A stretch of 64,000 nt of DNA, from positions 1,364,001-1,428,000 of the forward strand of contig LSRY02000008.1 of the NCBI GenBank assembly GCA_001643675.2, read 5' to 3'. The notes beneath the pieces are model-generated. The model was not told where the DNA came from. It saw only the letters and a program-made list of their open reading frames with translations, and did not search any database. The DNA is from Monocercomonoides exilis PA203 (Eukaryota > Protista > Preaxostyla). Both the position numbers and the translations under genes were made by a program. Numbering within the stretch: the first letter of the stretch is position 1; each line of letters starts with the position of its first letter. Below are positions 3,805-64,000 of this stretch, in pieces.

Positions 3805-5943
3805 GTGCTAGGTATGGGGATGGGGAAGGATGTTGAGGCAGGGGCATTTGATCTGAGTGGGAGCATTGGGGTGTTGACGAACATTACATTGAAGGGGTGG
3901 AGAAGTGGGGGAGAGATCTATTCAGGCAGGCTGTTTGGAGGGAAGGGATATGGAGGGGAGAAGGGTGGAGGTGAAGAAAAAGGAGGAGAAGGAGGAGAAA
4001 TGGGAAGAGGAAGAGGAAGAGAAGGAGAAGGAGAAGGAGAAGGCATTGAAGGGAGTATTTCGGTGAGTGAATCACACTTCTCTTCTTTTTGTGTCTCATC
4101 AGCCCCATTCCTCTCGTCGCCTTCAATACCCCTAATGTCCCTCTCCAAACTCACATTTTTCAACATCTCAACAGCAAATGAGGCATGCTCACCTTCAACA
4201 ACAACGTCATCCCAAACCTCATGTTTTATGAGTAGCTGCTCATTCTCATCAGTTTGTGATGCGTATGATGGAGGAATTGTCACTTCCCTCAACAACCCCT
4301 TTGCCTCTTTGACTGCCTCAAATACCTCGTTTGTTGGATGTTGCAGAACAAGAAATGTTGTTTGCGAAGGAACATCAGACAGAAAGTTGACTCCAGGGAG
4401 GCAGAACGAAACAGAAAATGGAGCAAATTCATTCACTTGGTGTGAATGGAACGGATCGAAGGCTAATGGAAGCAAAGATGATTATGCCGATGAAGCTTCC
4501 AATGGTGGAGCAATTCGAATGTATAACCTCAATTCAGGAGAACTGATAGTTTCGCATTGTTTATTCAATGATTGCTATGCTCATTATGCTGGAGGAGGGG
4601 TCATGTGTTTTGGAATCAGTTCGGTTGAGATTGAGCACAGTTTTTTTAATTCTTGTGAAGGACAAAATCGATATGGAGGAGGAATGTTTGTTTATACGAT
4701 TTCGTCGTGTGTTCGGATCAGTAGATGTGAATTTCTCAATTGTAAATCAAATGAGGCTGGAGGAGGACTTTATCTTAATGATTTCAAGGTTTCAGGAACA
4801 GGATGTATTGGAGAAGAAAATGAAGGAGGGGAAAGTGCGTGTGTGTTTGACTGCAGTTTCACTTCATGTTCAATTACGAACGATTGGGGTGGAGGCATGT
4901 TTTGCAAAAATGTTCCCAATCAATTCAAGATTAGAAGCGTCAGGTTTATTTCGTGTAACGCATCGACCAGGGGAGGCGGATTTCATTTGGAGCCAATAAA
5001 GCAAACTGTACCAGCTGATGGGCTTTATTGCTATTTCCTCTTCTTCCATGAATGCAAATGCTCGGGTGATCCACCACATGGTCACGACATGATATACTTG
5101 GACAATTACAATCACTATTTGAAATCAGGAAATCCGTTCAAAGAATGTTACACCACAAACACAGATGATCAGAGAGTGTGCTATGCATACAATTATGCAA
5201 GTGCAAAAGCTTGGTCATATAACCAAACATCAAAAAAGGTGTGGCTGAACGAATGGTCGAAGGTTCTGTTTGTGGGGGTGAATGGTAAGGACTCGAGTGG
5301 GCTGTGTGGAATGGGCGAGTCAGCACCTTGCAAGACGGTGGGACACGCAGTGGAGACGGGCTTGGAAGAGCTGAGCTCATCAATCACGCTGATGGAAGGG
5401 AATCACACGAGCGAGGCAACAACGATTGATATTGGAGAAAAGAAGATTTCAGTCATTGGGAAAGGCAAAGATAAAAGCTCGATTGGAACAGGAACACTTT
5501 CATCGGTAGGAACGCTATTCAGCGTGTCAACAGGTCATCTTGGTTTATTGCACATGAAGGTTGATTGCAATTCAAATTCAAGTCCTTCGCCGAGCGTGGT
5601 TGTGGTGTCTGATGGGGGTGGGTCACTCTCATTGGAGGATGTTGTGATCACCACGAGTGTTTCTTCAGGAAACTATGTGATGTCGTCGTCAGTGTTTGTG
5701 GTGCCGCTGTCGCAGCTATCGATGGTTGATGTGGAGATAACAGATATGAATGTCTCAAAATCATTGTTCTCTGAGTCGGATCTATCTTCTCCTTCTTCTT
5801 CTTCATTGTCGTCATTGTCGTCATTTTCATTGACTTCGTCTTCTTCATCTTCTTCGTCGACTTCATTGTCTTCATCGCCTCCTCCTGCGCTGTTTTCGAC
5901 TCTTCTTCCTTTTCTTCTCAGAAAGCAGTTTCACCAACGATAG
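3805..5943 (+). CDS. Cys/Gly-rich parallel beta-helix-like putative surface protein, copy 1 (5'-truncated, degenerate Ser-rich 3' end)
   Basis: 712-codon ORF with repeating GGAI/GGG-x-hydrophobic...CxFxxC units, FTWCEW, ESACVFDCSFTSCS, YCYFLFFHECKC and CG...PCKTV. It begins abruptly at the edge of the AT-rich hub, so the true start is uncertain. Fold inferred from repeat periodicity. Confidence 0.75.
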   Translation: MLGMGMGKDVEAGAFDLSGSIGVLTNITLKGWRSGGEIYSGRLFGGKGYGGEKGGGEEKGGEGGEMGRGRGREGEGEGEGIEGSISVSESHFSSFCVSSAPFLSSPSIPLMSLSKLTFFNISTANEACSPSTTTSSQTSCFMSSCSFSSVCDAYDGGIVTSLNNPFASLTASNTSFVGCCRTRNVVCEGTSDRKLTPGRQNETENGANSFTWCEWNGSKANGSKDDYADEASNGGAIRMYNLNSGELIVSHCLFNDCYAHYAGGGVMCFGISSVEIEHSFFNSCEGQNRYGGGMFVYTISSCVRISRCEFLNCKSNEAGGGLYLNDFKVSGTGCIGEENEGGESACVFDCSFTSCSITNDWGGGMFCKNVPNQFKIRSVRFISCNASTRGGGFHLEPIKQTVPADGLYCYFLFFHECKCSGDPPHGHDMIYLDNYNHYLKSGNPFKECYTTNTDDQRVCYAYNYASAKAWSYNQTSKKVWLNEWSKVLFVGVNGKDSSGLCGMGESAPCKTVGHAVETGLEELSSSITLMEGNHTSEATTIDIGEKKISVIGKGKDKSSIGTGTLSSVGTLFSVSTGHLGLLHMKVDCNSNSSPSPSVVVVSDGGGSLSLEDVVITTSVSSGNYVMSSSVFVVPLSQLSMVDVEITDMNVSKSLFSESDLSSPSSSSLSSLSSFSLTSSSSSSSSTSLSSSPPPALFSTLLPFLLRKQFHQR

Positions 5944-6032
5944 TTGGCATTTCTTCGTTTGGTCAAGCACAATAACCCCAAAATAGCAACAATGCTTGGC
6001 AAGATGTTCCAGCAGCACTCGCCTCTCAGAGC

Positions 6033-6106
6033 CATCAAGTCAATCAAGCTCGTCAAGTCCGTCAAGTCCGTCAAGTCCGTCAAGTCCGTCAAGTCTGTCA
6101 AGTCTT
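6033..6106 (+). repeat. 9-bp tandem repeat (GTCAAGTCC)n, about 8 imperfect copies
   Basis: gtcaagtcc repeated directly at 6052-6105 with degenerate leading units. Confidence 0.9.
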
Positions 6107-7130: not shown

Positions 7131-10089
7131 ATTGTCAAGTTTGAATACTATACATCTTCTGACAGAAGATATTCTCAGCATCACGGCCTCGTTCTCTGCT
7201 CTTGTGAATAACGTTTCAATGATAGAAGGCTGAAGACAAAGGTCAAATGACTCAAATCCATTTTACCTGTAATTTGCCTCCAGCTGCCTGTATTACGCAA
7301 AACTGTCCGTTTTTCTCGTTTTTTCGCCTCTCAAGCCAAGCAATGAAAAGCAGTTCCATCGCTCCCCCCAGCGCATAAAATCAATGTCTTGCCCTTCTCA
7401 TTCCAAGAAAGGCGCCTTGTTCTGTTCTAGCTGCCTCCAATGTCCTGTTTCACTCATCTGCCCCAATCGCCCCAACAAACTTAAAAATGAAAATGTCCTC
7501 TTCCTCTTTTTAAAAACGTTCCCTTTTCATTGAAGTTGGCTGTTCTTCCTTTTGGCCTTGGAAGTCTTTCAACCCCGTTGATTTCTGCATCATTAAATTT
7601 CATTTTTCATCACATTTCTATCCATCGCGCATGTTGAGTCCAAAATAAGTCACATAAATATTTATGATAAAATACATTCAGGCTCTAATAATATATTTGT
7701 AAGATAACATTTGACTCGCTTCATTGCTGTTCTGTTCTGCAAAGAATAAATTGTCCATTTTATATAATTTGTCTGAATCACCACTTTGGAGAGGATACGG
7801 ATGGAAATATCTTCACAACAAATAGAATAATATAAAATACATACATTGAAAATTCTTCATTTCCATCGAAAATATTGTCGCTCCACAGCATTCCAACAAT
7901 CGAAATGAACAATTTCATCTTCCATCGAATAAATATTCTTTTGTAATACCCAACCTATTTACTGGAAATATTTCATTTAGTCAATCTGTCTTTGTTTTCA
8001 CTTCGGAGTCTCACTCCGTTGACAGTTTCTGAGCATTTGGCATTTCTTGATCATTTTCCATAACGAATAAGAGCCACAAAAGAAAAAGAGCACAACTCGA
8101 TGTGTCGTGGCTGAATGGGAATATGAAGACAATGCGATAACAAAAGGATGGACTTGTGGTGTGGGGTGAAGGAGTTGAGTTTTTGGAGGAGACAGGGTTT
8201 TGGAGGGGGAAAGGAACGATAAAAGAATATTTTTTGTGGAAAAGAGGTATTTTTGTGATATTTAAAAGGCAAAATGGATGTGCGGGAGATGGATTTGGAT
8301 GGGATTTTGAGGGGTTGTTTTTTCGATTTTTGTGAGTTGGAAGGAGTGGAGGTCGTGTTTGTTATTTGAGAAAAGGATTTTGATGTTGAGGAGGTGGGGT
8401 GAGAAGGGGCAGAGGTGCGGAAGATGGGTGAAGCGAATGGAATATATTATCTTTGGAGGAGAGGATAAGAGATGGAGAGATATGTGGAGGAGGTGTTTTT
8501 TTATTTTCAAATGCAGAGAAGGAGGAGGCATATGGGGCAGGGCAAGAGGGAGAGCATTTGTGAGTGAGTGTTTGATAAGAAAGAGAAGTGGGGTTGAAGA
8601 AAAAAAAAGTGAGAGATATTTATTTAATATTTTAAATTTTTTATTGAAAGGATAGTTTGGCCGCGCCTCTCATTTGCAGGACAAGTGTTGGAGGCGGAGG
8701 CAGAGGAAGACGGGAAGAAGGAACATCAGCGCTGGCTCTTTGCATTGGAGGTGCGGAGACAGAGGAAGATGAGGAGCTGACTACGAGAGGCGTCTTGCAA
8801 TGGAAAGAGACAGAAAAAGGATGGAGATATTTATTTTTATTTTTGGTTGGAAGAAGGGGAATGGGAGCTGGGGGGACAGGGATTGTGATATTTTGTGGAG
8901 TGATATTGTTGTTGTTTTGAGGGGAAATGGAGAGAAGAAGAAGAAGATTTGGGCAAGGGATGGGAAAGGATTCTTCAGATGGAATCTTCTTCTTTTCCAG
9001 TTCTTTATGGAATAGAGTTTGTGAAGTTATTTAAGTGGAAATAAGACCAAGGATTGGAAGTGAATGATTTTTAGGAGAAGCAGAAGGGAAGCGAAGAAGG
9101 GGCGGATGGGCTTTGTTGGCAGAAAGGAACGATATTTTGGGGAAAAAAAAGGAAATGAAGAAGAAAGGATGAATTAGAAAAAGTGTGTGAAGAAAATTCA
9201 TTATAAAATAATTTGTTGTTATTTGTTTTGTTTTGTTTTTTAAAAATATCTTTCACATTTTTTTTTACAAATTTGTATATTTTTTATATTAAATTTCATG
9301 ATATTTTTTATTTTATATATTTTTATTCGGAATATTCAGTGAATTTCCGAAAGATGCGCAGAAAGCCATCACATGTTGTCTGAGGAGCGCAGATTGTTTT
9401 TTTAGCTTTGCTTGAAGAATGAGAGGAGGAAGAGAAATATTTCATATTTTTTGGATTGAGGGTTGGATGGAGGAAGATGAGAAGAGAAGAATGGTGAGAG
9501 TGAGGTTGGATGGGCAATGGAAGAGCGGGCGAAAACAACATTTAATTTTTTCTTTATTTTTGGAATTAGATTTGAAAGGCGAAGGCGTGGTGTGTGTGGT
9601 GCTTGGAGTGGATGATGTTGGGGTGAGAGGCATTTGGAGAGAGGCAAACAGGGGACGAGGGGAGTGAAGGGAAATGAAGATTTGTGGAGGTATTTTGTTC
9701 TTGTTTGTTCATATTCTTCATGTTCCATTTTTTATTTGTATTTGTATTTGTATTTTTTGATTTGATTGATGTGTGATGCGATCAGGTGTTGTCAAAAGCG
9801 CTGGGGGAGCATGAAACATGGGATGTGGAAACACTGCTTTTTTTATGAGCATTCCTGGAAGAAATTGGGAGAAATCAGCAACCGAAGAGTGTTTGGCAGA
9901 ATGAGCGAGACGGAAAAAACTGAAGAGAATGAGGAAAGAAATTTTTGTGGAATTTTTATTTACAAAAATCTTTTCGGAAGCAGCAGCAGAAGAGGCAGAA
10001 AAGAGGAACTCAAGCTCAATGGGATATTTTTTGGCATGGCGCTAAGAGGCATGGGGAAGGGGGAGAAGGAAAAGGAAGAAATTCTGTGA

Positions 10090-11523
10090 ATGAATTTCAT
10101 TTCTCTTCTTTTTGCCAATTTTTTATCGCCGCCCTCTACACCCCTTAAATCCCTCTCCAGACTCACTTTTTTCAACATCTCAACAGCAAATGATGCATGT
10201 TCACCTTCAACAACAACATCAACCCAAACCTCTTGTTTTATGAATGGTTGCTCATTCTCATCAGTTAGCGACGCATATGATGGCGGAATTGTTCATTCCC
10301 TCAACAATCCTTTGGCTTCCTTATCTGTTTCAAACACCTCGTTTATTGGGTGTTGTCGAACAAGGAATGTTGAATGCATTGGAACTGAAACTAATAGGCT
10401 GGCTCCAGGGAGACAGAACATTACAGTGAATGGAGCAAACTCATTCACTTGGTGCGAGTGGAGTGAATCGAAGACGACTGGAAGCAAAGATGATTATGCC
10501 AATGAAGCTTCCAATGGTGGAGCAATTCGGATGTATAACCTCAATTCAGGAGAACTGACAGTTTCGCATTGTTCATTCAATGATTGCTATGCATATTATG
10601 GCGGAGGCGGAATCATGTGCCGTTCAATCAAGTCAGTTGATATAACAAACAATTTATTCAACGCTTGCAATGCTCAAAACAATGCTGGAGGGGGATTGTA
10701 TGTTGTATTAATTTCATCATGTGTTCGGATCAGCGGATGTGAGTTTCAGAAATGTTCTTCTTATGGCTGGGGAGGAGGACTTTATCTTGATAATTTTCAG
10801 GTTTCAGGAACAGATTGCATTGGAACAGAAAATGGAGAAGGGGAAAGTGCGTGTGTGTTTGACTGCAGTTTCACTTCATGCTCAGTCACAAATTCGCAAG
10901 GTGGGGGCATGCGTTGTGCTACTGTTCCTGCAACGCAATTCAAAATGAGGAGCATTCAGTTTTTTTCATGTTCTGCACGGCAAGAAGGTGGAGGATTGTG
11001 TTTACATCCAAATCGAGCAACAGCACCGAATGATAAATTTTATTGTTATTTTTTGTTTTTCACGAATGCAAATGCTCTGCAGCCACTCCATATGGGCATG
11101 ATATGATATATTACGATAATAACAATTTATATTTATCTCAAAATAACCCGTTCCATGAATGTTACACAACAAACACAGATGACCAAAGAGTATGTTATGG
11201 ATATGATTTATCGAATTCAGGGAGTTGGAAATTTCAGCACACAGAAAAAAAAGGATTGGCTGAAGGACAAGACGATATATGTTTCAATGAATGGAAATGA
11301 TGCATCTCCACTTTGCGGATCAAATGAATCAAATCCGTGCAAAACGGTGAAGAAGGCGTTTGAGATGTGTGAGGTGCAGATTAGCTTGACAATCACGCTG
11401 CTGGATGGAAATCATCAAAGCGAGACAACAACAATTGAGATTGGGTCAAAGAAGGTTTCAATCATTGGGACGAGCAAAGAGAAGAGCGCGATTGGAACAG
11501 GAGTGCTTTTTTTTAAATCATGA
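10090..11523 (+). pseudogene. Beta-helix family copy 2 (two compensating homopolymer frameshifts; 3'-truncated at hub)
   Basis: Mirror of 13924-15357. One T fewer at 11056-11060 and one A more at ~11245-11252; these may be sequencing errors. Confidence 0.75.
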
Positions 11524-12156
11524 CTGGATGGTTTAAGATGCGTGAATAAGTATGCCCAACATTTTTCAAAAACAAAAGTGGATTAATATTTTGCATACAA
11601 ATACCAAAAAAATGCATTTAGTCGTAGCTATTGTTTGTAATAGGAAAAAGCTTTTTTACATATATTTTTATAGATTTTTCATCATTTTTTTCATTCTTAT
11701 ATTTATTACAAAAACATTATTAGCAACAGAAAAAAATAAATATATTTTTTCTGTGCAAAATTTGAAAAGAACATCAGGTCGAAAAAATATATTTTTGTGA
11801 TTGCTTATGCAGAATCATTTTTTTTCCTTGTTATTGTGAATAAAATCTTTCATTCATGTGAGTTATTATCTGTGGAAACTCCAGTGTATGAACTTAAAGA
11901 TACTGTTTGCCAAAACGAAATCCATATTCCGTTGAAAAGCTGAATCTTCCTTTTCGGATTATTTTTACACACATACATATTAACAAGTGTGTATACATAT
12001 GGACAATTCTTTTTGAATTCATGATAATTTTTAATCTTTTTTTTTCTTTTCTTTTTCTTTTTTTCAATAAAAATATTTCTTTTTTTGAAAACACTTCAGA
12101 AGCATTAACCAATCTTTGTGAAGAATTGTCATTAGCAAAACTTATCAATGTATATT

Positions 12157-12402
12157 GGGTGATAATTTTTGATGTCATGCCTTTACTGTAAAAAATTTCG
12201 GTTTTAATATATATCTTGAATGGTGATAAATGAACACTGAAAATTGATAATACCTTTTCAAGATAATTATGTCATGAACTTATCTCAAATAATGGCTTTT
12301 GCAACAATTATTTTATGTTCGAAATTTGATAAAAAACTTTTTGTTATTGGCAAAAAAACATTTTTTCAAATCAACACTCCGAAAAAAGTTATGATTTCAA
12401 AA
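12157..12402 (+). repeat. Conserved hub module with inverted ends; homologues at 835-1362, 37212-37460 and ~54320-54755, plus their mirror copies
   Basis: Same order in all four hubs: GGGTGATTATTTTTGA ... TGAACAC(T/A)(G/A)AAA ... TCAACACTCCGAAAAAAGTTATGATTTCAAAA. The middle TCGGTTT(G/T)A element is seen in P2, P3 and P4. Confidence 0.75.
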
Positions 12403-13923
12403 CAAAAAAGTCGCACAATATAACTTTTCAATAACGTTTCAGATGTGTAATGAAAATCAGATTTGATAAAACTTCTTTCGAATTTGAATTGGACTTGATT
12501 CAAATGGTATTTTTTCAGAAATTATCTTTGGAAACAAATGTTTGTCATTATGATTTCATTTTTTTCATTCAAATCATAATTGTTCAGCAATCATGGAATA
12601 TGTCAAATATGTCTTGATTTCTCAAAAATTCTATCATTATTTATCAAATATGTAATGTTTGTTTTATTATCAATTATTAAACAATCACATTCGTTTGTCA
12701 TATTTCAATTTCAGATCTCAGAGTTTCATAGAAAAGGAAATGAATCATTAATGATGTTTGTTTATGTTCAAACAGGAAAAAGATACTATTATAAAATTTC
12801 TGTTGAATAATGACAGAATTTTTGAGAAATCAAGACATATTTGACATATTCCATGATTGCTGAACAATTATGATTTGAATGAAAAAAATGAAATCATAAT
12901 GACAAACATTTGTTTCCAAAGATAATTTCTGAAAAAATACCATTTGAATCAAGTCCAATTCAAATTCGAAAGAAGTTTTATCAAATCTGATTTTCATTAC
13001 ACATCTGAAACGTTATTGAAAAGTTATATTGTGCGACTTTTTTGTTTTGAAATCATAACTTTTTTCGGAGTGTTGATTTGAAAAAATGTTTTTTTGCCAA
13101 TAACAAAAAGTTTTTTATCAAATTTCGAACATAAAATAATTGTTGCAAAAGCCATTATTTGAGATAAGTTCATGACATAATTATCTTGAAAAGGTATTAT
13201 CAATTTTCAGTGTTCATTTATCACCATTCAAGATATATATTAAAACCGAAATTTTTTACAGTAAAGGCATGACATCAAAAATTATCACCCAATATACATT
13301 GATAAGTTTTGCTAATGACAATTCTTCACAAAGATTGGTTAATGCTTCTGAAGTGTTTTCAAAAAAAGAAATATTTTTATTGAAAAAAAGAAAAAGAAAA
13401 GAAAAAAAAAGATTAAAAATTATCATGAATTCAAAAAGAATTGTCCATATGTATACACACTTGTTAATATGTATGTGTGTAAAAATAATCCGAAAAGGAA
13501 GATTCAGCTTTTCAACGGAATATGGATTTCGTTTTGGCAAACAGTATCTTTAAGTTCATACACTGGAGTTTCCACAGATAATAACTCACATGAATGAAAG
13601 ATTTTATTCACAATAACAAGGAAAAAAAATGATTCTGCATAAGCAATCACAAAAATATATTTTTTCGACCTGATGTTCTTTTCAAATTTTGCACAGAAAA
13701 AATATATTTATTTTTTTCTGTTGCTAATAATGTTTTTGTAATAAATATAAGAATGAAAAAAATGATGAAAAATCTATAAAAATATATGTAAAAAAGCTTT
13801 TTCCTATTACAAACAATAGCTACGACTAAATGCATTTTTTTGGTATTTGTATGCAAAATATTAATCCACTTTTGTTTTTGAAAAATGTTGGGCATACTTA
13901 TTCACGCATCTTAAACCATCCAG

Positions 13924-15357
13924 TCATGATTTAAAAAAAAGCACTCCTGTTCCAATCGCGCTCTTCTCTTTGCTCGTCCCAATGATTGAAACCTTCTTTG
14001 ACCCAATCTCAATTGTTGTTGTCTCGCTTTGATGATTTCCATCCAGCAGCGTGATTGTCAAGCTAATCTGCACCTCACACATCTCAAACGCCTTCTTCAC
14101 CGTTTTGCACGGATTTGATTCATTTGATCCGCAAAGTGGAGATGCATCATTTCCATTCATTGAAACATATATCGTCTTGTCCTTCAGCCAATCCTTTTTT
14201 TCTGTGTGCTGAAATTTCCAACTCCCTGAATTCGATAAATCATATCCATAACATACTCTTTGGTCATCTGTGTTTGTTGTGTAACATTCATGGAACGGGT
14301 TATTTTGAGATAAATATAAATTGTTATTATCGTAATATATCATATCATGCCCATATGGAGTGGCTGCAGAGCATTTGCATTCGTGAAAAAACAAAAAATA
14401 ACAATAAAATTTATCATTCGGTGCTGTTGCTCGATTTGGATGTAAACACAATCCTCCACCTTCTTGCCGTGCAGAACATGAAAAAAACTGAATGCTCCTC
14501 ATTTTGAATTGCGTTGCAGGAACAGTAGCACAACGCATGCCCCCACCTTGCGAATTTGTGACTGAGCATGAAGTGAAACTGCAGTCAAACACACACGCAC
14601 TTTCCCCTTCTCCATTTTCTGTTCCAATGCAATCTGTTCCTGAAACCTGAAAATTATCAAGATAAAGTCCTCCTCCCCAGCCATAAGAAGAACATTTCTG
14701 AAACTCACATCCGCTGATCCGAACACATGATGAAATTAATACAACATACAATCCCCCTCCAGCATTGTTTTGAGCATTGCAAGCGTTGAATAAATTGTTT
14801 GTTATATCAACTGACTTGATTGAACGGCACATGATTCCGCCTCCGCCATAATATGCATAGCAATCATTGAATGAACAATGCGAAACTGTCAGTTCTCCTG
14901 AATTGAGGTTATACATCCGAATTGCTCCACCATTGGAAGCTTCATTGGCATAATCATCTTTGCTTCCAGTCGTCTTCGATTCACTCCACTCGCACCAAGT
15001 GAATGAGTTTGCTCCATTCACTGTAATGTTCTGTCTCCCTGGAGCCAGCCTATTAGTTTCAGTTCCAATGCATTCAACATTCCTTGTTCGACAACACCCA
15101 ATAAACGAGGTGTTTGAAACAGATAAGGAAGCCAAAGGATTGTTGAGGGAATGAACAATTCCGCCATCATACACATCACAGACCGATGAAAATGAGCAAC
15201 TGCTCATAAAACTTGATGTTTGGGTTGATGTAGTTGTTGAAGACGAACATGCATCATTTGCTGTTGAGATGTTGAAAAAAGTGAGTCTGGAGAGGGATTT
15301 AAGGGGTGTAGAGGGCGGCGATAAAAAATTGGCAAAAAGAAGAGAAATGAAATTCAT
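13924..15357 (-). CDS. Beta-helix family copy 3 (477-aa open cassette, truncated after IGTG at the hub)
   Basis: Continuous ORF with all family motifs. Homology to longer copies stops at ...AIGTGVLFFKS, where the AT-rich hub begins. Confidence 0.75.
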   Translation of the reverse strand: MNFISLLFANFLSPPSTPLKSLSRLTFFNISTANDACSSSTTTSTQTSSFMSSCSFSSVCDVYDGGIVHSLNNPLASLSVSNTSFIGCCRTRNVECIGTETNRLAPGRQNITVNGANSFTWCEWSESKTTGSKDDYANEASNGGAIRMYNLNSGELTVSHCSFNDCYAYYGGGGIMCRSIKSVDITNNLFNACNAQNNAGGGLYVVLISSCVRISGCEFQKCSSYGWGGGLYLDNFQVSGTDCIGTENGEGESACVFDCSFTSCSVTNSQGGGMRCATVPATQFKMRSIQFFSCSARQEGGGLCLHPNRATAPNDKFYCYFLFFHECKCSAATPYGHDMIYYDNNNLYLSQNNPFHECYTTNTDDQRVCYGYDLSNSGSWKFQHTEKKDWLKDKTIYVSMNGNDASPLCGSNESNPCKTVKKAFEMCEVQISLTITLLDGNHQSETTTIEIGSKKVSIIGTSKEKSAIGTGVLFFKS

Positions 15358-18475: not shown

Positions 18476-18507
<32 letters not shown>

Positions 18508-20414: not shown

Positions 20415-20448
20415 AATAATGAGTTTGATCTTAAATTATGGGTGGTTT
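20415..20448. repeat. DIRS subterminal inverted repeat (34 bp), partner at 26489-26522
   Basis: AATAATGAGTTTGATCTTAAATTATGGGTGGTTT is the exact reverse complement of AAACCACCCATAATTTAAGATCAAACTCATTATT. Confidence 0.93.
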
Positions 20449-21051: not shown

Positions 21052-21150
21052 ATTATTTCGGAGCAAAACCTGTCTCACTGCGTTCTATCAATTCGCAATA
21101 GAGCGAATATCCGAACGCAAGGAGCAGGTTTGCTCCTCAATAATGAGTTT
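21052..21150. other. DIRS internal complementary region (ICR)
   Basis: 21052-21091 is the reverse complement of terminus 20381-20420, and 21087-21150 is the reverse complement of terminus 26511-26574. Together they spell the circular junction GCGAATTGATAGAACG. Confidence 0.95.
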
Positions 21151-51636: not shown

Positions 51637-54600
51637 GATAGCAGCACAAGCATTTAAGAGGCGAATGATTTTTATTGGAATAAGGCTGTGTGAAAAGGGA
51701 GGTACATCAACAGGAAAAAATAAGCTAACTTTATTACAAATAGCAAATAGAATATTTTTTTTTCCTTTGGAAAAGGAGGAGAGCGAGAAAGGAGAGCTCT
51801 GTATTACGAGCCATTGTTATTTTATCTGAATTTATTTATTAAACAGCCAGCGGATCTGCTTGCTGATAATTTTGATTTCAACTTCTAAAATATATGTTTT
51901 TGGTAAGACTGATTGTATTTTCCATGATTCATTTGACTCAAGGTGATATTAATTTGATAAACGGTGATTAACTATTTGCTTCTTTAAAAAGGCGTGGGCT
52001 AAGTTCTGTACTATGTGCTATATCCTGAGCTTGTTCTCATAAAAGCGATTATTAAGATCATGATTCTGTGTAAATCTATTGCAATCTCCTTCAATGAGTT
52101 GATGTTACACATCACGACAATATGTTTTTCTGGTGATATTTTTTTCTATTTTTTTGCCTTCTGGAAGATAATGTCAGAATTATATTAGTGACTTTTTTTT
52201 TTCCTTTTTTTTTATTATTATTAATTTTCATTAAAATATTGTTTGAATATATATGGATGATTATTTTTCAAATCATAACTTTTTTCGGTGTGTTGAATAT
52301 GGGACGAAATTTTTTGCTTTATGAATTTTGTTCCACACAATCTTTTCAAAGATTTTCCTCAACTTTTTAATATTTAAATATTTTATTTTGCATGAGAATG
52401 TTAGAATTGCAAGTATTCGATACAGAAATTGATGGAACAAATCATCGATTTTTTCATAAATGCAAGAATTCTGACCCATATCCAAAGGTTTTTTGTTATT
52501 AGCCAAATAATTTTCATCTGAATGTTGAATGCATGTCAATTATTACAAAAGCCAAAGTTAGATACGAAAAAATAGTAGAGGAGTCATAAAACAGATCCAT
52601 CACTTTTTAGTGTTCATTTAGGAAAATTCAAAGCAAATATTCAAACCGAAATTTTAAACAGAAATAATTTGATTTCAAAAAAGACCACTTATAATATGGG
52701 TGATTATTTTTGAAATCATAACTTTTTTCGGGGAATTGATATTTCAAAGATTGTTCATCTTTGACTGAAAATATTTTTTTCAAATTAAAAATGTTTTGCA
52801 TTTCTTTTAAGAGCCAATGTTTGAGATTTGTTCATAGCAAAATTTTCAACAAATGGAAAATAATATTTTGGTATTCATTTATTCATATACAATGCAAATT
52901 TTCTTTCCGAAAATTTTGATAGAAAAAATATGATATCAAAAATGATCACCCATAATATATTCACAAATAATTTTGAAATGTGATGTGACATTGTCTCCGA
53001 AAATTAATTTTTGTCATTTCTATCTTTTCAAAAAGATCTTCAAAATAATGTTTTTGTTCAATTTTTATGATCGAAGACATGCTTGTGTTCCTACAAACTT
53101 CGTAATTTTGTTGTTTGAAATGCAATCATTGTTAATTTCTTCACCATTTATTATTCAAAATTGATAAACTTCTTTTTCATAATTAATAAAATTGAGAATT
53201 TTTTTAAAAAAATTTTTTGTGAAAAATTGGTTTTTGGCCGAGTATCGAAAAGTGATGAATATATTATATTTTTTCATTATTTATAAAATAGATGAAAATT
53301 TGAATCCCAATTAATATTATTTGTCAATTGACATTATATTTTCTGATTTTTCAGAAAGAAATCATCATCATGAAAATCGGAAAATTTTTAAAATTAATTC
53401 TACTTGCATTATTTTAACTATTCATGAATAAATCAATATATATTGGTTATTTCATTTTCAAATTATGATAACAAATATATTTCTCAATTAAACAAGTCCA
53501 TTAAGACACTTTATGAATTCCTTATTTGTTTTGAAGTGTTAACCTGAATTCATTTTAAAATAATTGAATTATATTGATTGAATAATGCATAACTAATCAT
53601 TGCAAATTGAACAAATTTGAAAATTATTAGATAACAATGCTGCAGGTCATTTTCTTAAAAATTAGAAAATATAATGTCAATTGACAAATAATATTAATTG
53701 GGATTCAAATTTTCATCTATTTTATAAATAATGAAAAAATATAATATATTCATCACTTTTCGATACTCGGCCAAAAACCAATTTTTCACAAAAAATTTTT
53801 TTAAAAAAATTCTCAATTTTATTAATTATGAAAAAGAAGTTTATCAATTTTGAATAATAAATGGTGAAGAAATTAACAATGATTGCATTTCAAACAACAA
53901 AATTACGAAGTTTGTAGGAACACAAGCATGTCTTCGATCATAAAAATTGAACAAAAACATTATTTTGAAGATCTTTTTGAAAAGATAGAAATGACAAAAA
54001 TTAATTTTCGGAGACAATGTCACATCACATTTCAAAATTATTTGTGAATATATTATGGGTGATCATTTTTGATATCATATTTTTTCTATCAAAATTTTCG
54101 GAAAGAAAATTTGCATTGTATATGAATAAATGAATACCAAAATATTATTTTCCATTTGTTGAAAATTTTGCTATGAACAAATCTCAAACATTGGCTCTTA
54201 AAAGAAATGCAAAACATTTTTAATTTGAAAAAAATATTTTCAGTCAAAGATGAACAATCTTTGAAATATCAATTCCCCGAAAAAAGTTATGATTTCAAAA
54301 ATAATCACCCATATTATAAGTGGTCTTTTTTGAAATCAAATTATTTCTGTTTAAAATTTCGGTTTGAATATTTGCTTTGAATTTTCCTAAATGAACACTA
54401 AAAAGTGATGGATCTGTTTTATGACTCCTCTACTATTTTTTCGTATCTAACTTTGGCTTTTGTAATAATTGACATGCATTCAACATTCAGATGAAAATTA
54501 TTTGGCTAATAACAAAAAACCTTTGGATATGGGTCAGAATTCTTGCATTTATGAAAAAATCGATGATTTGTTCCATCAATTTCTGTATCGAATACTTGCA

Positions 54601-55364
54601 ATTCTAACATTCTCATGCAAAATAAAATATTTAAATATTAAAAAGTTGAGGAAAATCTTTGAAAAGATTGTGTGGAACAAAATTCATAAAGCAAAAAATT
54701 TCGTCCCATATTCAACACACCGAAAAAAGTTATGATTTGAAAAATAATCATCCATATATATTCAAACAATATTTTAATGAAAATTAATAATAATAAAAAA
54801 AAAGGAAAAAAAAAAGTCACTAATATAATTCTGACATTATCTTCCAGAAGGCAAAAAATAGAAAAAATATCACCAGAAAAACATATTGTCGTGATGTGTA
54901 ACATCAACTCATTGAAGGAGATTGCAATAGATTTACACAGAATCATGATCTTAATAATCGCTTTTATGAGAACAAGCTCAGGATATAGCACATAGTACAG
55001 AACTTAGCCCACGCCTTTTAAAGAAGCAAATAGTTAATCACCGTTTATCAAATTAATATCACCTTGAGTCAAATGAATCATGGAAAATACAATCAGTCTT
55101 ACCAAAAACATATATTTTAGAAGTTGAAATCAAAATTATCAGCAAGCAGATCCGCTGGCTGTTTAATAAATAAATTCAGATAAAATAACAATGGCTCGTA
55201 ATACAGAGCTCTCCTTTCTCGCTCTCCTCCTTTCCAAAGGAAAAAAATATTCTATTTGCTATTTGTAATAAAGTTAGCTTATTTTTTCCTGTTGATGTAC
55301 CTCCCTTTCACACAGCCTTATTCCAATAAAAATCATTCGCCTCTTAAATGCTTGTGCTGCTATC

Positions 55365-56962
55365 TTATAAATTCTCAAATGATTTATACCAAAAATATAT
55401 CAACACACCAATCATTCCACTTACCCCGGCTATCGTACTGAATAAAGTAAATGGCGTTGTCTCTCCTGCTGCTGCTGCTGCTGAAGAAGAAGAAGAAGAA
55501 GAAGAAGAAGAAGAAGAAGAAGAAGAAGAAGAAGAAGAAGAAAGTGCTCCTGTTCCTATCGAACTCTTCGTCCTTCCCTTCCCAATGACTGAAATCTTCT
55601 TTGCCCCAATATCAATTGTTGTTGTCTCGCTTCGATGATCCCCTTCCATAAGCGTGACTGACAAGCTTATCTGTATCTCACACATCTCAAACGCCTTCTT
55701 CACTGTCAGACAAGGATTTGATTCATTTGACCCGCACAGCTCATATTCATCATTTCCATTCGCTGAGACATATATCGTCTTGTCCTTCAGCCAATCCTTT
55801 TCGATATTTGATCATACACCCAACTCCCTGAACTCGAATAATTATACACATAGCATACTCTCTTGTCATCTGTGTTTGTGGTGTAACATTCATAGAACGG
55901 ATTTCCTGTGCTCAAAAAAACATTGTAATAATCATAATACATCACATCATGCCCATATGGATTGGAGGTTGTTCTGCATTTGCATTCATGAAAGAAAAGG
56001 AAAAAACAATAAACTCTATCATCTGGTGCATTTTGTCTATCTGGATTAAAATGAAACCCTCCTCCATATCCCATTGCAGAACATGAGATAAATTGAACGC
56101 TCCTCATCTTGAATTGGGGAACTATATTATAACAACACATGCCCCCACCACTATTACCGGTAAGTGAACATGAAGTGAAACAGCAGTCAAACGCACACGC
56201 ACTTTCGCCTCCTTCGTTCTCATCTCCAATACATCCTGATCCGGTCACTTGAATATTTTCTAATCTTAAGCCTCCTCCACCATTATTTGCTTTACAATTC
56301 TGGAATTCACATCCGCTGATCCGAACACACGACGAAATGGAATGAATAAACATTCCACCCCCACGATAATTTTGCGCAGTACATGAGTCGAAAGTGTTAT
56401 TTACAATCTCAACAGATTTTATGTTATAGCACATGACTCCTCCACCATTATAATAGGCTGTGCAGTCATCTAATGAACAATGCGAAACAGACATAGAGGC
56501 AGATGGTTGACTGTACATGCAGATGGCCCCTCCACTTGACACTCCATCAGTCCACGAATCGCTTTCTCCTGTTGTTTTCGACCCATCCCATTCACACCAA
56601 GTGAATGAGTTTGCTCCATTCACTGTAATGTTCTGTCTCCCTGGAGCCAGCCTATTAGTTTTAGTTCCTTCACATACAACATTCCTTGTCCGATAACACT
56701 CGATGAATGATGTGTTTGAGGCTATCAAAGAGGCATAGGGGTTGTTGAGGGAATGAACAATCCCTCCATCATATACATCGCTAACCGATGAGAATGAGCA
56801 ACTACTCATCAGGCATGTGATTTGGGTTGACGTTGTTGTTGGGGATGGACAATCTGTAGATGCCGTTGAGATGTTGAAAAATGTCAGATGATAGAGGGAT
56901 GCAAAAGGGATGGAAGGTGATGAGAAAAATGGGGAAGAATATGAGAAATGAAATTCGTTCAC
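55365..56962 (-). pseudogene. Beta-helix family copy 11 (mirror of copy 10; A4 vs A5 frameshift at ~55800)
   Basis: ORFs 55787-56962 and 55365-55703 together reproduce copy 10, apart from shorter Ser/Ala runs. Confidence 0.75.
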
Positions 56963-59900
56963 AAAAATTCTTCCTTTTCCTTCTCCTCCTTCCCCATGCC
57001 TCTTAGCGCCATGTCAAAAAATATCCCATTGAGCTTGAGTTCCTCTTTTCTGTCTCTTCTGCTGCTGCTTCCGAAAAGATTTTTGTTAAAAAAATCCCAC
57101 AAAAATTTCTTTCCCCATTCTCTTCAGTTTTTCCATTTCGCTCATTCTGCCAAACACTCTTCAGTTTCCCATTTCTCCCAGTTTCTCCCAAGAATGTCCC
57201 AGAAAAAAAGCAGTGCTTCCACATCCCATATTTCATGCTCCCCCAGTGCTTCTCATAACACCTGATCGCATCACACATTTATGAAATTTAAAAAAATACA
57301 AATACATAAAAATAAAAAATGATATGTGAAAAAAATTAACAAACAAGAATAAAATACCTCCAGATATCTTCATTTCCCTTCACTCCCCTCATCCTCTGTT
57401 TGCCTCTCTCCAAATACCTCTCATCCCAACATCATCCACTCCAAGCACCACACCACACCACGCCTTCGCCTTTCATATCCAATTTCAAAAATAAAGAAAA
57501 AATAATATGTTGTTTTCACCCTCTCTAACATTGCCCATCAACCCCGCTCTCACCATTCTTCTCTTCCCATCTTCCTCCATCCAGCCTTCAATCCAAAAAA
57601 AAAATATAGAATATTTCTCCTCCTCTTCTCATTCTTCAAGTAAGGCTTAAAAAAAAACAGTCTGCGTTCCATCGATATACCTCAGACAACATGTGATGGC
57701 TTTCCATCCATCTTTTGAAATTCACTCAATATCTTCAATAAAAAAAGAAATAAACATAAAATTAAATATAAAAAATATATATATAAATTCTCATGAAACA
57801 AATCATCAAACCTGTCTCCTCCTACGCCCCGAAAGGCTCACAAAGCAATCGCACATTCCCTTTCCTGTGCTGTCTCGACTGCCCAGATGAGTATGACTGC
57901 ATCCCCAAACATCCTGTGCCAACCTCTCTTCCCCATCTCCTTGATTTCCATATCCTCTTCCATTTTCGTATTGTTCTTGATAGCAATCATCGGCGTGTGC
58001 CTTTCAACACATACTCCCCCCTCAATCATTCACAATCATCCCCACCCATCAGCTCCCAAAATATAACATCCAACTCGCTTTTGTCTCCTCCTTTAAAATA
58101 AAAAAATATGTGTGTGTGAAAATCTCAGCTGAGATGTGTTCCTCCACCAAACATGCACTCCACCACACACTCTCCATCCCCTTCCCCTTCCTGCTCCTTC
58201 TCACAAACATTGTTTCCCTCATTCGCCTTTCTTTTCCAAAAAACGAACTGCAGATAAATCATCCCATCAATCATAGCTGCTGCAAGTACCATTGTCTCTT
58301 GTGGGCATCTGCTTCTCTGATCAGCCACAAGCTGAACCCTGCTCCCCACAAACAATCTCGCTTATAAATCAAACACTGCCAAACACATGAAATTCAGAAA
58401 ATGAACAAAATATCCCCAAAACAAGTTTATTTTTTGTTTCCACACACCCCCCTCAACCATGTCCATTTTCACTCAGCCATTGCCGAGATAAAGAAAATAT
58501 GAAAATGATTTGTTGGTTTGAGTCTTTTTTGTAATGGATTCTATGATCATCAGATTCGAAAGAACGGAATAATTTATTCACAGAATGAGAAATCCGTGAG
58601 TGAACATTATCTGTAGAACTAGAAATATTATTTCCTGTGGAGGCAACAAGAAATGGTGGAGATGCAATAATGCTGAAATTCTGACCTTTGATTTTTGGTA
58701 ATCGGATGACCAAGGGGAATATATCAATTTCATCAATAACACAAAAATGATATTGTATGTATTTTTTATTGTTCAATTGATTGTGAAGATATTTCCGTCT
58801 GTATCCTCTCCAAAGTGCAGGAATATGAGTTATTGTTGAAATGGCCAATCCCCGCTTTGTGGAGCAACACGATGAGAACGGAGCAGATTATTATATAGGC
58901 ATTGGGAAATAAATGAAGTTACGCAAGATACATGATTTTTTATTTGGAACAGGAGATGAAAACAAATTCGACTGTTATATTATAAAATGAAGATAACAAG
59001 AAGGAATTCTGTGAAGAACAAAATCTGCACAAAATTATATAGCATTTGGGAGCATAAGGCAATGGAGCAGTTTGGGGTATTTTTTGGCAAGGAAAGTGGA
59101 AGGCAATATCGAGGGAAGGACATTTCTTGCGAATAAAAACTTAGAAAACAATGCAAGCGATGAGAGTGGAGATCAGGGACATCAATGGGAGTAAAACAGC
59201 TGCTGCTGCCGTTGGAAAGATGCATGTGTGTTTTGTGGAATATGCGCAGAGAAGCAAGACTTTCCAAAAATTCGTGCTTAAATGAAAAAGAATAATTTGT
59301 GACAAAAGCATCAGTCTTGGCCTGTGTTCCTGCAAGAATGGCAAGACAAGTGAAGTATCCTGCAGCTGTTACCGTTCTTTAACCTTCTCCGAGCTGCTGC
59401 AAGGACGAGTCTAAAGCTTGGCGTTTCGTTGTCATGGGCAGTTATACAGCAATTTGAGTTGGGAATTATCTTCTGCCCCGTCTCCATCAACGGTATTTCG
59501 ACTTCTGCTGGCAAAGTTCAGTATTTTTTGAGGCTCTGTTCGGCTGCTGATTTAGGGTTGGGCTGTTTTGCTACAGTTGTTGCGGGGGATGGCAACAAAG
59601 CGACTTTGTCATATCTGCTGCCAACTGCAACAGGTGGATCAGCCTTTTTCTTCTTCTTCTTCTTCTTCTTCTTCTTCTTCGTTTTTGTCATTTTTGAAGC
59701 AGACGAGCATTGGCAGCAACGAGGGATGAATTGAGGCAAGCACATGCAATATGCGTGAAGAGAGCCAAGGGATAAAAGGACGGGCATATCCCTGACGTTC
59801 CTGATATTGCCATGACAGAAAATGGGATGTGCGCTTGAAGCGCCGGGGATGAGCGAAGCAGCGCAACGGCTATGGAGCAGCACACAGCACTCAAGGCATG

Positions 59901-60674
59901 CTGTTTTTCCGCGTATTGTGTTGACCGTGCTTGAGGCAGAGGGAATGGCGGGATGAGTGTTCTTTTTGTGTGAGTTACATGATTGAAGAAGGTGAGGAAA
60001 GGAGGGATGGAAGTGCCTTGTTTTATTTGAGAGGAAGGCAGAAGAGGGAGAAGGAAGACATGGATTGAAAGGATCAAGGAAGAGAAGAAGGGTTATGAGA
60101 CCGAGACGAGAGAAACGAGGGAACAAGAGAAGGAGAAGAAGAATGAGGAGAAGAGAAGGGAAGTGAAGAAGCGGAAAATGAAGCGGAAGGTTTCGAGAAG
60201 AAAAAGGTATAAGGATTATATCTCAAAAGTCATATTTTTGATATTTTATTTCAAATTTATTTTCAAATATTCTTTCAATTTTCTTTCTTTTTTTTTCCAT
60301 ATTTAATTTAATATTTCTTCAGTTTATTTTTTATTTTTCAGAATTTTTACTGTTATTTTTTAAATGACAAAAGTGCATTTGCATGAGTCGTCAAGAGCAA
60401 TGGATGTGAATGGAATGTGGAAAAAAGGCAGAAGACGACAATAGAAGAAAAAAAGAGATAATAGGGAAAGCAAATGGCGAAGAAGATTATGTTCTTGTTT
60501 CAATTTGGTGGAACTGAAGGAAAAAGACGCTTTTCTTTTGGGAATGCGCATTTCAGAAGCAGGAGAAGAGGCAGGAAAAGGGAATTCAAGCTCATTTGAA
60601 TCTTGACGAATATCTTACTGAGAGGCATGGTAGGCATATGACAAATGATTGAAGGAAAAGGAAGAGTATTTCAG

Positions 60675-62159
60675 TGAGAGAATCAAGCTCCATTTCTTAC
60701 AACTCCCTCGATGCTCCTTATTTCCTTCTCACAACTCACATTTTTCAACATCTCAACAGCAAATGAGGCATATTCATCTCCAGCAACTACATTTTCCCAA
60801 ACATCATGTTTGATATACAGCTGCTTATTTTCATTAGTGTGTGATGCATATGATGGAGGAATTGTTCCTTCTCTGAACAACCCCTTGGCCTCTCTGACTG
60901 CCTCAAATACCTCATTCGTTGGATGTTGCAGGAAAAGGAATGTTGAATGCAATGGAACTGCAGAGGTACCATTAAAGCCAGTGAGACAAAGCACAACAAC
61001 CAATGGAGCTAATTCATTCATTTGGTGTGAATGGAATGGATCGAAGACGACAGGAACAGAAAATACATGGGAAGACATTGCTTCAAATGGAGGGGCTATT
61101 TGCATGCACAGCCAATCAAATGCTATAATTTCAATTAAGCACTGCTCATTCAATGATTGCAATGCTTATTGTGATGGAGGAGGAGTCATGTGTGCAAAAA
61201 TCAAATCTGTTGAGATTGAAAACAACTCATTCAACTCATGCACAGCTCAAAAAAGTGCTGGAGGAGGGATGTGTATTTATGTGATTTCAACATGTGTTCA
61301 GATCAGCGGATGTGAATTCCAGGATTGTAAAGCAAATGGATATGGAGGAGGACTTTATCTCGACAATTTTCAGGTTTCAGGGCCAGGATGCATTCCAACA
61401 GAAAATGGAGGAGGAGAAAGTGCGTGTGTGTTTGACTGCAGCTTTGCTTCATGCTCAGTGACAAGCACAACTGGTGGAGGAATGCGTTGTTACAATATTC
61501 CTGTTCAAGTTAAGATTAGAAGCATTCAATTTATTTCATGCAATGCATCGTCATATGGAGGAGGGTTGAGTGTGGATCCACGTATTACAACAGCGCCAAA
61601 AGATGGACATTATTGTTATTTTCTTTTTTTTCACGAATGCAAATGTTCGGCCACTTCTCCACGGGGACATGATATTGCATATACAGATTATTACAAACAT
61701 TTTTTGGATTCTGGAAATCCGTTCAACGAGTGCTATACTACAAATGCTGATGATAGAAGAATGTTTTATGAACACTATGATGGTACTAATTGGGTGTATG
61801 ATCAAATATCGAAAAAGGATTGGCTGAAGGACAAGACGATATATGTCTCAGCGAATGGAAATGATGAATATGAGCTGTGCGGGTCAAATGAATCAAATCC
61901 GTGTCTGACAGTGAAGAAGGCGTTTGAGATGTGTGAAATACAGATAAGCTTGTCAGTCACGCTTATGGAAGGGGATCATCGAAGCGAGACAACAACAATT
62001 GATATTGGGGCAAAGAAGATTTCTGCTGTTGGAAAGGAAAAAAAGAAGAATGCGATTGGAAGGAATGCTGTTTTGCCTTTATTCTCTGCTCCGCAGCTTT
62101 TTATTCTCCTCTTCTTTTTTCATCTCCTTCAGACTCGTCTTCTTCGTCTTCTTCATTAA
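60675..62159 (+). CDS. Beta-helix family copy 12 (482-aa ORF from 60711; truncated after KKISAVGK)
   Basis: Continuous ORF with family motifs; both flanks decayed. Confidence 0.75.
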
Positions 62160-62864
62160 TATCTTCAATTTCTGTTTTATTATCTTCAATTATATTGTAG
62201 TCATTGTCTATTTTTAATATTTTGGCTGTTGGAATTATTCGGCCGGAAGCCACGCTGAGGAAAGGAAATGAGCAAAATTTGGAAGCAGAAGAGGGTCAAT
62301 TTCATTGGTCGTGAGATGGAAAGCGGAGATGGAGAAGAAGGGTTTTGAGATTGAAATTGGAGGGATGAGGGAATACTGGTCGGAGGAGAAGAAACGACGA
62401 GGAAGAAAAAGTGTGTGAAGAAAACTCAAAATAAAAAGGTTTGCTGAATGATTTGTTTTGTTTTTCTTGTACAAAATTAATTCTTTGATGTTTCTGTAAT
62501 ATTTTTTCATACTTTTCTTTGAGTGATTTTATATCATTTATTTTTTATAATTATTTTATGACAATAAGAATTTTTTGGATGAGTATTCAAAAGCGAAGAA
62601 TGCGAATGGAATATGGAAAGAAGGCAGAAGATGGTTACAGTTGAAAAAGTGATTTTGGAAAAACAAATGATGAAGAATGTTGGAATGCTGCTTCCGTTCA
62701 GAAGCATTGAAGAAAAAAGATGCTTTTCTGCTTTTAATGGGAGCCAATTGTCTTCAGCAGAAGAGGCGAGGAAAGAATCTGAATTTAGGAAATATTCTGC
62801 TACATGGCGCGGAGATGCAAAACAGGTGTATGGTCAAAAAATCAAAAGAGAAGGAAGAATTTCA

Positions 62865-64000
62865 GTGAGTGAATCGCGTTTCTCATCTTCTTCCCCATTT
62901 TTCTTTTCACCATCTATATCCCTTATATCTCTCTTTCATTTGGTATTTTTCAACATCTCAACAGCAAATGAGGCATGCTCACCTTCTACCACTATGTCAA
63001 CACAAACCTCATGTTTTATGAGTAGTTGCTCCTTTTCATCAGTCTGCAATGCATATGATGGCGGAATTGTTCCCTCACTCAACAATCCCTATGCCTCTTT
63101 GACTGCCTCAAACACCTCGTTTGTTGGATGCTTCCGGACAAGGAATGTTGTTTGCGAAGGAACTTCAGATGTCAAGTTGACTCCAGAGAGGCAAAGCATT
63201 ACAGAAAATATAGCGAATACGTTCACTTGGTGCGAATGGAACGGGTCGAAAACAACAGGAGATGTTGACGATCATACTGATCGTACTTCAAATGGCGGAG
63301 CAATCAACATGAACAATTTGGCATCTGCCTCAATTTCTATTCAACACTGCACGTTCAACAACTGTTATGCGCATTATGGAGGTGGGGGAGTAATATGCCG
63401 GCAAATCAAAACACTCATTGCTGAAGACAATACATTCAATGATTGTACAGCTCAAAGTTATTATGGAGGAGGATTGTATGTTTATTATATAACTTCGTGT
63501 GTTCGGATCAGCGGATGTGAATTCCAGGGTTGCAAAGCAAGTATTCAAGGAGGAGGACTTTTTCTCGAAAATTTTCAGGTTTCAGGGCCAGGATGCATTC
63601 CAACAGAAAATGGAGGAGGAGAAAGTGCGTGTGTGTTTGACTGCAGCTTTGCTTCATGCTCAGTGACAAGCACAACTGGTGGAGGAATGCGTTGTTACAA
63701 TGTTCCTAATCAATTTAAAATGAGGAGCATTCAGTTCATTTCATGTTCAGCAACTGCATATGGAGGAGGATTGAGCTTCAGACCAGAAAAATCAGAAAAG
63801 CCAGATGATGGGTTCTATTGTTATTTCCTGTTCTTCCACGAATGCAAATGCAGAGATGAATCTAATCCATATGGTCACGATGCGTATTATGTTGATTATT
63901 ACAATGTTTTTTTGAGCACAGGAAATCCGTTCTATGAATGTTACACAACAAACACAGATGACCAGAGGATGTGTTATGTGTATAATTATTCGAGTTCAGG
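62865..64000 (+). CDS. Beta-helix family copy 13 (partial, runs off the window end; absent from the ORF track)
   Basis: Manual reading from GTGAGTGAATCGCGT gives VSESRFSSSSPFFFSPSISLISLFHLVFFNISTANEAC, later FTWCEWNGSKTTG, ESACVFDCSF and YCYFLFFHECKC. Confidence 0.8.
   Translation, partial: MSESRFSSSSPFFFSPSISLISLFHLVFFNISTANEACSPSTTMSTQTSCFMSSCSFSSVCNAYDGGIVPSLNNPYASLTASNTSFVGCFRTRNVVCEGTSDVKLTPERQSITENIANTFTWCEWNGSKTTGDVDDHTDRTSNGGAINMNNLASASISIQHCTFNNCYAHYGGGGVICRQIKTLIAEDNTFNDCTAQSYYGGGLYVYYITSCVRISGCEFQGCKASIQGGGLFLENFQVSGPGCIPTENGGGESACVFDCSFASCSVTSTTGGGMRCYNVPNQFKMRSIQFISCSATAYGGGLSFRPEKSEKPDDGFYCYFLFFHECKCRDESNPYGHDAYYVDYYNVFLSTGNPFYECYTTNTDDQRMCYVYNYSSS

Follow-up and report, generated by a model that had tools for sequence, protein, structure and literature searches.

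A probable gene conversion reservoir of head-only fragments for the receptor-pseudokinase genes of Monocercomonoides exilis

In Anaplasma msp2, Neisseria pilS/pilE and the mosaic VSG genes of Trypanosoma brucei, truncated hypervariable donors recombine into complete surface genes at one or few expression sites, with switching documented under immune pressure. The chicken pseudo-V genes, headless open donors that stay readable, diversify a receptor binding tip through a somatic, AID-driven conversion with one rearranged target gene. In Borrelia burgdorferi vls, 15 silent cassettes serve one expression locus by one-way flow (PMC9159922). Monocercomonoides exilis is a gut protist that lacks mitochondria. 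Here we analyse a 64,000-nucleotide stretch of its DNA (the window; GCA_001643675.2, contig LSRY02000008.1, window position being record position minus 1,364,000) that carries repeated partial genes, here called pieces, for which a preliminary description had proposed a role as silent donor cassettes. The pieces probably belong to a conversion reservoir of head-only fragments that serves about 100 receptor-pseudokinase genes.

Copies were aligned in a frameshift-aware manner to the N-terminus of MONOS_13710 (2,907 residues), the reference for head coordinates. The 13 copies counted earlier are all present as anchor matches at the places given, but they amount to eight loci, since five sit in palindromes with near-identical arms. 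Every copy holds the same module, the N-terminal ‘head’ at residues 165–612 of MONOS_13710, which at about 450 amino acids is longer than the ~400 first estimated. The full-length members predicted to exist elsewhere were found. Their start resembles a signal peptide, and they have a single membrane segment and a cytoplasmic tail; the module is the first ectodomain block of these very long proteins. At least 120 long relatives (1,500–4,300 amino acids) were recorded, many with a hydrophobic start, the feature from which signal peptides were judged, and many with one membrane segment plus a tail of tyrosine-kinase-like type; HRD and DFG are absent from all 97 tails checked. By these predicted features the complete genes, about 100 in number, are receptor-like pseudokinases. 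Very probably they are members of the tyrosine-kinase-like family, which is larger than any other in M. exilis (PMC6759080). The accessible text of the papers on that family gives 332 predicted kinases and an overlap with ‘unclassified repeats’, counts kinase domains only, and describes no ectodomain, head-only arrays or conversion (PMC6759080, PMC8767320). The best 120 matches of the protein searches came from M. exilis alone. MONOS_13710 was rejected as single recipient because the best matches fall on 25 different long proteins.

For comparison, 15 further loci were fetched from this contig and three others, giving 23 distinct fragment loci; six of the fetched loci were picked via annotated proteins and hence have open frames by selection. 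In the window and seven loci, the fragments are limited to residues ~140–795 of the 2,907, and beyond 795 only complete genes are found. Among short annotated proteins, 168 match the head versus 18 that match an equally long mid-gene piece; these 18 are scattered on other contigs, and 79 of the 103 listed head fragments with an assigned contig sit on four contigs. Because several copies in the fetched loci lack annotation, the annotated count understates the arrays. Fragment arrays are present on each of LSRY02000055.1, 71.1 and 45.1 (together 1,549,232 bases). Upstream of MONOS_13710, at ~600 bases, lies a perfect 372-base inverted repeat (7598–7969/8951–9322 of the fetched locus).

The fragments cover the fastest-diverging part of the receptors, as close paralogues differ most there. 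Receptor pairs with bodies at least 90% alike have heads that are on average 72% alike, the value being 64% for bodies 80–89% alike, and in close-bodied complete genes the covered region is often down to 40–65% identity. A second low-identity zone against close paralogues lies at residues ~800–1400 of MONOS_13710 (43–68%), with a smaller one at residues 800–900 in the twin genes considered next; no fragments for the second zone were seen in the loci examined.

Exact DNA tracts are common to pieces and full-length genes, as the idea of donors and recipients had anticipated. The tandem twins MONOS_16438 and MONOS_8047 on contig 45 lie in an 11.9-kb direct repeat and differ at 2 positions in ~9.8 kb outside the head and at none in the first 190 bases, versus 188 in the 1.5-kb head. 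Near half of the codon changes in the twin heads are synonymous (70, with 76 non-synonymous), so that blocks were imported rather than point-mutated. MONOS_16438 is identical to fragment MONOS_16280, located 30 kb away, over 431 bases that run across 39 twin-difference sites, and MONOS_8047 and the third copy of this trio, MONOS_8050, match other fragments. In this region (about 296–324 kb of the contig), the repeat starts ~70 bases before the annotated start and ends ~2.4 kb past the stop, with small kinase genes between and after the twin receptors. Similarly, MONOS_13710 equals fragment MONOS_16745 over 238 bases. In the window, a piece 1 segment shows 6 mismatches in 197 bases (97% identity) to MONOS_9366 on another contig, with the variable blocks beside it only 58–68% alike; two further fragments carry the segment too, and MONOS_9366 is the sole complete gene that does. 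Fragment pairs that are 70–80% alike share identical runs of up to 139 amino acids, and within the window pieces 6 and 7 share 111 exact bases and pieces 7 and 8 share 132. The two arms of piece 2 differ by a single 73-base patch that we read as a recent conversion tract; its donor was not found among the fetched loci or proteins. Together these tracts show segmental gene conversion among pieces and receptors.

The tract comparisons draw on a single genome, that of one cultured clone. Residues private to one receptor head and lying in identical runs of at least 25 amino acids numbered 349 with fragments versus 172 with other receptors (24 versus 10 genes; 46 complete genes compared), and within the twin trio 58 of 107 private residues were fragment-covered versus 16 receptor-covered. 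Since private head residues are about twice as often covered by fragments, the comparison favours fragments as donors, with a net direction from piece to receptor. Several observations weigh against this account. Direction is not readable from one genome, and certain tracts are found in more than one receptor but in a single fragment. In six fragments the 5' end is long and receptor-like (85–92% identical to full-length genes in four), which indicates that flow runs from receptor to fragment too. The median receptor overlaps known fragments at only 5% of its variable sites, and in the 8 gene pairs compared the assemblies of 2016 and 2021 have the same heads. Fragments are moreover transcribed and spliced, and all have an in-frame methionine by codon 199.

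The receptor-like ends also bear on a rival explanation in which the fragments are passive by-products, duplicated debris overwritten by conversion from receptors and from each other, with gifts back to receptors incidental. Some fragments have receptor-like extensions at both 5' and 3' ends, fragment and receptor heads intermingle on the tree (39 label changes versus 69 when shuffled), private changes at invariant sites are few (12 of 2,994), and the genome is rich in conversion-prone palindromes. However, the nearest head is another fragment for 96 of 110 fragments, and shared runs from fragments cover 37% of fragment variable sites versus 12% from receptors. A weaker point is that about three stops would be expected from the private changes and none is seen. 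Debris would also leave the ninefold excess and the clustering of head-only pieces unexplained. We regard this explanation as unlikely.

The cores of the pieces are free of stop codons in every copy across codons 165–612, and they do not decay like the flanks. With the core/upstream boundary set post hoc at codon 175, one break was counted in 9,920 core codons versus seven in 1,423 upstream codons over the 23 loci (p = 3.5e-6); downstream, the six breaks in 1,402 codons take in non-homologous overrun. The ratio of non-synonymous to synonymous substitution rates (dN/dS) rose from 0.02 through 0.19 and 0.51 to 0.88 from invariant to hypervariable sites (21 fragments, dS 0.8–1.1; site classes taken from complete genes only) and was 0.27 overall. 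Conserved cysteines were lost at 0.45% of fragment sites versus 2.1% in receptors, and invariant residues are retained no less well in fragments than in complete genes. The uneven breaks and the overall dN/dS rule out ordinary decaying pseudogenes, and the substitution pattern indicates that the core framework is under purifying selection. In line with the upstream frameshifts noted earlier, real breaks just before the core, at codons 145, 154 and 162, occur in both arms; piece 1 is the exception, its frame being uninterrupted between codons ~35 and ~770 and free of upstream breaks. Six frameshifts within cores are confined to a single arm. Each is a difference of one base, usually within a homopolymer, and sequencing error is the best reading; the older 454-derived MONOS_14448 has an intact frame at a place where one of the arms is shifted. 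As described, there is no shared ATG, the first in-frame methionine varying from about codon 61 to 199, and copies end soon after the core, raggedly, with stops at about codons 624–863.

The proposed beta-helix fold is borne out by a predicted right-handed parallel beta-helix with a model confidence (pLDDT) of 75 overall and >90 in the coils. A Foldseek search of the PDB with the module model returned weak rows only and no significant match, and a wider structural search gave a Z score of 19.0 to 5mqp (root-mean-square deviation 3.3 over 242 residues), many beta-helices being similar. The module has one GGAI and five GGG turns with FxxC, and variable and invariant blocks alternate such that variable blocks flank every GGG turn in register. 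The most variable sites fall at equal offsets in six successive coils, namely three residues before each GGG turn and +4, +6 and +7 from its first glycine, and hypervariable sites are rich in tyrosine (17.7% versus 4.9%). From this coil register it follows that the variable sites should stack on one face of the helix.

In the accessible descriptions, the Pmp proteins of Chlamydia and trichomonads likewise have a GGA/GGG turn, an FxxC/FxxN-like motif and a right-handed beta-helix, with a single membrane segment in the trichomonad Pmp-like proteins (PMC6701047, PMC11166332). A feature-level search reaches the Chlam_PMP and Beta_helix clusters, and Pfam gave no match, including Chlam_PMP, in the window copies. 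Unlike Pmp proteins, those of M. exilis have cysteine-rich coils, a length of 2,000–4,000 amino acids and a pseudokinase tail, and the same accessible descriptions mention no fragment archive for Pmp-like proteins (PMC6701047, PMC11166332). Membership of the chlamydial/trichomonad Pmp family was rejected because Chlam_PMP repeats (GGA[ILV] with FxxN) are absent and the likeness is at the feature level only.

Contrary to the earlier assumption of silence, pieces 7 and 8 are transcribed and spliced. Evidence from RNA consisted of contigs in sequencing runs, which report presence only, with level, ends and translation not readable from them. The runs were X3 (2016; labelled DNA by guess, it behaves as RNA) and X4 and X5 (both 2024), with X1 as DNA run. 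Over 59700–64000, X3, X4 and X5 contain copy-specific contigs covering pieces 7 and 8. The RNA skips the GT-AG leader introns of both pieces, and intron bins are depleted in RNA but not in X1. Sense-strand spliced RNA is present in two studies; piece 1 sequence is present in four RNA runs. The leader intron is conserved in most fragments examined and has a branch-point-like motif 8–12 bases before the acceptor. With the exons joined and translated in all frames, the spliced leaders proved decayed: no frame is free of stops, and upstream ATGs are numerous. The pieces are thus transcribed remnants rather than silent cassettes. Sequences before and between pieces (59700–60206 and 62150–62438) are also present in the RNA runs, so that a transcript may extend far or run on into the following piece. 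Splicing into the anchor, suggested by branch-point and acceptor likeness, was rejected because RNA contigs of pieces 7 and 8 cross it with no joint there. Introns were rejected as the cause of the upstream frameshifts because the real intron lies ~360 bases upstream of the anchor and its removal leaves stops in every frame of the leader. The RNA contigs of pieces 7 and 8, as records of presence only, gave no sign of Dscam-like alternative exons or trans-splicing.

Own translation of fragments is possible, and the fragments might be stand-alone genes in which an internal ATG starts a short soluble beta-helix protein, a decoy or sensor, whose selection keeps the frame. The sense-strand spliced RNA, the conserved leader intron and the in-frame methionine in every copy fit such genes, as does a dN/dS of 0.09 downstream of Met199 versus 0.40 upstream. 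Against them, the product would be a domain with 20 invariant cysteines without a signal-peptide exon, starts vary by 140 codons and ends by 280, the tails being unrelated, and the in-frame methionine of piece 7 is preceded by 11 ATGs in exon 2 as well as by the decayed leader. Codons 165–190 have a dN/dS of 0.40 (interval 0.20–0.75), below 1, in copies that are unable to translate them, and Met199 is kept no better than in receptors (89% versus 93%). Stand-alone genes are quite improbable as the explanation.

Compared with the cassette systems, the M. exilis fragments share with vls, msp2 and pilS the incomplete donors of a variable region, the in-frame donors with alternating blocks and the donor-identical segments in complete genes (431, 238 and 197 bases); donor silence and one or few expression sites are lacking. 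With vls/vlsE in particular they have in common copies that are incomplete but in frame and confined to the variable region, variable blocks separated by invariant ones, conversion of a complete gene segment by segment and no visible switching in culture (PMC9159922). Unlike in vls, there are well over 100 fragments in arrays on four contigs and about 100 complete genes, the fragments are transcribed, there are signs of two-way flow and boundary repeats were not seen. Most VSG donors are broken, whereas the M. exilis cores are open, and in contrast to msp2, pilE and VSG the recipients have a membrane segment and a kinase-like tail. The fragments resemble chicken pseudo-V genes in being headless open donors for a binding tip and differ from them in that neither AID-type machinery nor a single target is shown in M. 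exilis. Because silence and a single expression site fail and the bias towards fragments as source comes with counter-examples to one-way flow, we do not file this system as a vls-type member, although it works like a cassette reservoir.

Classical programmed antigenic variation, with silent cassettes feeding one expression site in a fast, one-way manner for antibody escape, would account for the cassette-like layout and the segmental mosaics. The active switching it implies was not seen, the heads being identical in the two assemblies for the 8 gene pairs compared. This stability is no bar, because vlsE is likewise stable in culture (PMC9159922), and on the same comparison the unchanged heads appear to limit switching in culture and leave switching in the host possible. 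What makes programmed variation of this kind very unlikely is that candidate recipients number about 100 and not one can be pieced together entirely from known fragments (at best 51% of variable sites), that the donors are transcribed, that flow shows signs of running both ways, and that the recipients are receptor-pseudokinases. The recipients are not simple coat antigens; donors for full-length genes elsewhere fit the exact shared tracts, with the qualification that recipients are many and often near the pieces.

In the reservoir that we prefer, fragments would have begun as 5' portions of receptor genes that kept the old promoter and intron, lost everything past about residue 800 and let the signal-peptide end decay. 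They would then have multiplied through tandem and inverted duplication. Homologous recombination via the invariant framework may copy tracts tens to hundreds of bases long, both from fragment to fragment and between fragments and complete genes. The receptor tip would thereby have its exposed binding face rewritten on an unchanging body, and continued exchange with selected genes would keep the fragments readable. Net flow from fragment to receptor, and selection for a donor role, are what we infer from the comparisons above. Ligands to be guessed from the fold are bacterial or host glycans. A more far-reaching version, in which regulated, immune-like diversification has arrays matched to receptor subfamilies rewrite binding faces fast in the host gut, with roles for palindromes and transcription, is doubtful. 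If it held, the system would track changing bacterial prey surfaces or host antibodies, palindromes would help to copy and preserve fragments, and transcribing these might make them accessible to recombination.

Self-comparison showed that four palindromes with spacers of 98–319 bases make up most of the window (Table 1). Same-strand pieces 3-4-5 and 7-8, as well as four fetched loci, are spaced at 2.1–2.8 kb. A DIRS-like retroelement occupies 20381–26574 on the minus strand between two TTGAT copies, with reverse transcriptase and RNase H domains (open reading frame 22581–25535), overlapping gag-like frames and a recombinase-like open reading frame (21262–21870) without Pfam match. The mirror arm near 46119–46123 is the empty site for this element, which implies that palindrome 3 formerly extended to 19796/46708. 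The centres of palindromes 1 and 4 (~1364–2036 and ~53167–53839) are homologous and AT-rich (~69% over 685 bases), suggesting a common hairpin-type seed. In palindrome 2, the outer 570 bases (9276–9848 versus mirror) have 32 substitutions and the inner 2.3 kb none, a gradient consistent with arm homogenisation that weakens away from the centre. Reads of both DNA and RNA runs have an extra base at 59962 and 62658, both residual assembly errors, and the latter makes the open frame of piece 8 appear shorter.

Table 1 Features of the window, with positions on the forward strand.
Feature	Position	Strand	Remarks
Palindrome 1	1–3401		Spacer 1625–1777; no piece inside window part
Head piece 1	3796–5874	+	Receptor residues 54–752; open frame 3736–5940; without signal-peptide exon
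Piece 1 segment common with MONOS_9366	4891–5087	+	6 mismatches in 197 bases
Palindrome 2	9276–16162		Spacer 12633–12814; doubles piece 2
Head piece 2, left arm	10038–11508	+	Real frameshift 10116; single-arm shifts 11057, 11250
Piece 2 arm-difference patch	10203–10275	+	17 substitutions between arms otherwise identical
Head piece 2, right arm	13939–15409	-	Alignment to receptor
Palindrome 3	26570–46123		Spacer 36297–36394; doubles pieces 3, 4, 5
Head piece 3, left arm	27192–28816	+	Alignment to receptor
Predicted leader intron, piece 4	29536–29697	+	GT-AG, 10% GC; aligns with spliced intron of piece 7
Head piece 4, left arm	29979–31420	+	Stop 29999 upstream of core, both arms
Head piece 5, left arm	32384–34362	+	Stop 32470 upstream of core, both arms; extends to residue 795
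Head piece 5, right arm (MONOS_14448)	38329–40308	-	
Head piece 4, right arm	41272–42714	-	
Head piece 3, right arm	43876–45501	-	
Palindrome 4	48151–58844		Spacer 53345–53663; doubles piece 6
Head piece 6, left arm	49987–51504	+	
Head piece 6, right arm	55494–57010	-	
Leader intron, piece 7	60207–60373	+	GT-AG, 167 bases; spliced in runs X3, X4
Head piece 7	60681–62102	+	Copy-specific contigs in RNA runs
Leader intron, piece 8	62439–62568	+	GT-AG, 130 bases; spliced in run X4
Head piece 8	62739–64000	+	Cut by window end at residue 525

The near-identical arms and the single-base slips in one arm raise the question of an assembly artefact, in which fold-back long reads and homopolymer errors gave rise to duplicates and breaks. 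The assembly is nanopore-based, from unamplified DNA with short-read polishing (PMC8767320), and the unamplified library excludes amplification fold-backs as the palindrome source. The palindromes carry unique spacers, the arms of palindrome 2 differ by the substitution patch and the diverged outer end, and the retroelement lies in one arm of palindrome 3 only. In addition, the upstream stops are present in both arms and most fragments have gene numbers from the older 454 assembly. An artefact accounts for the single-arm slips only and is extremely improbable as an explanation of the pieces themselves.

We found no published description of the head-family structure or of such arrays in oxymonads in the literature covered, outside which most subscription papers fall. 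Donor archives are known from pathogens of blood and mucosa and from the antibodies of birds, nearly always with a single target, whereas the reservoir proposed here would serve a whole signalling-type receptor family in a harmless gut flagellate and its donors are transcribed. More than 100 ‘uncharacterized proteins’ of M. exilis, and some of its unclassified repeats, would be accounted for by it. In a clone that can be cultured, the trio MONOS_8047/16438/8050 beside its array, and MONOS_13710, are exact loci for measuring how fast and in which direction conversion proceeds. These findings suggest that the largest gene family of M. exilis has a fast-changing beta-helix tip.

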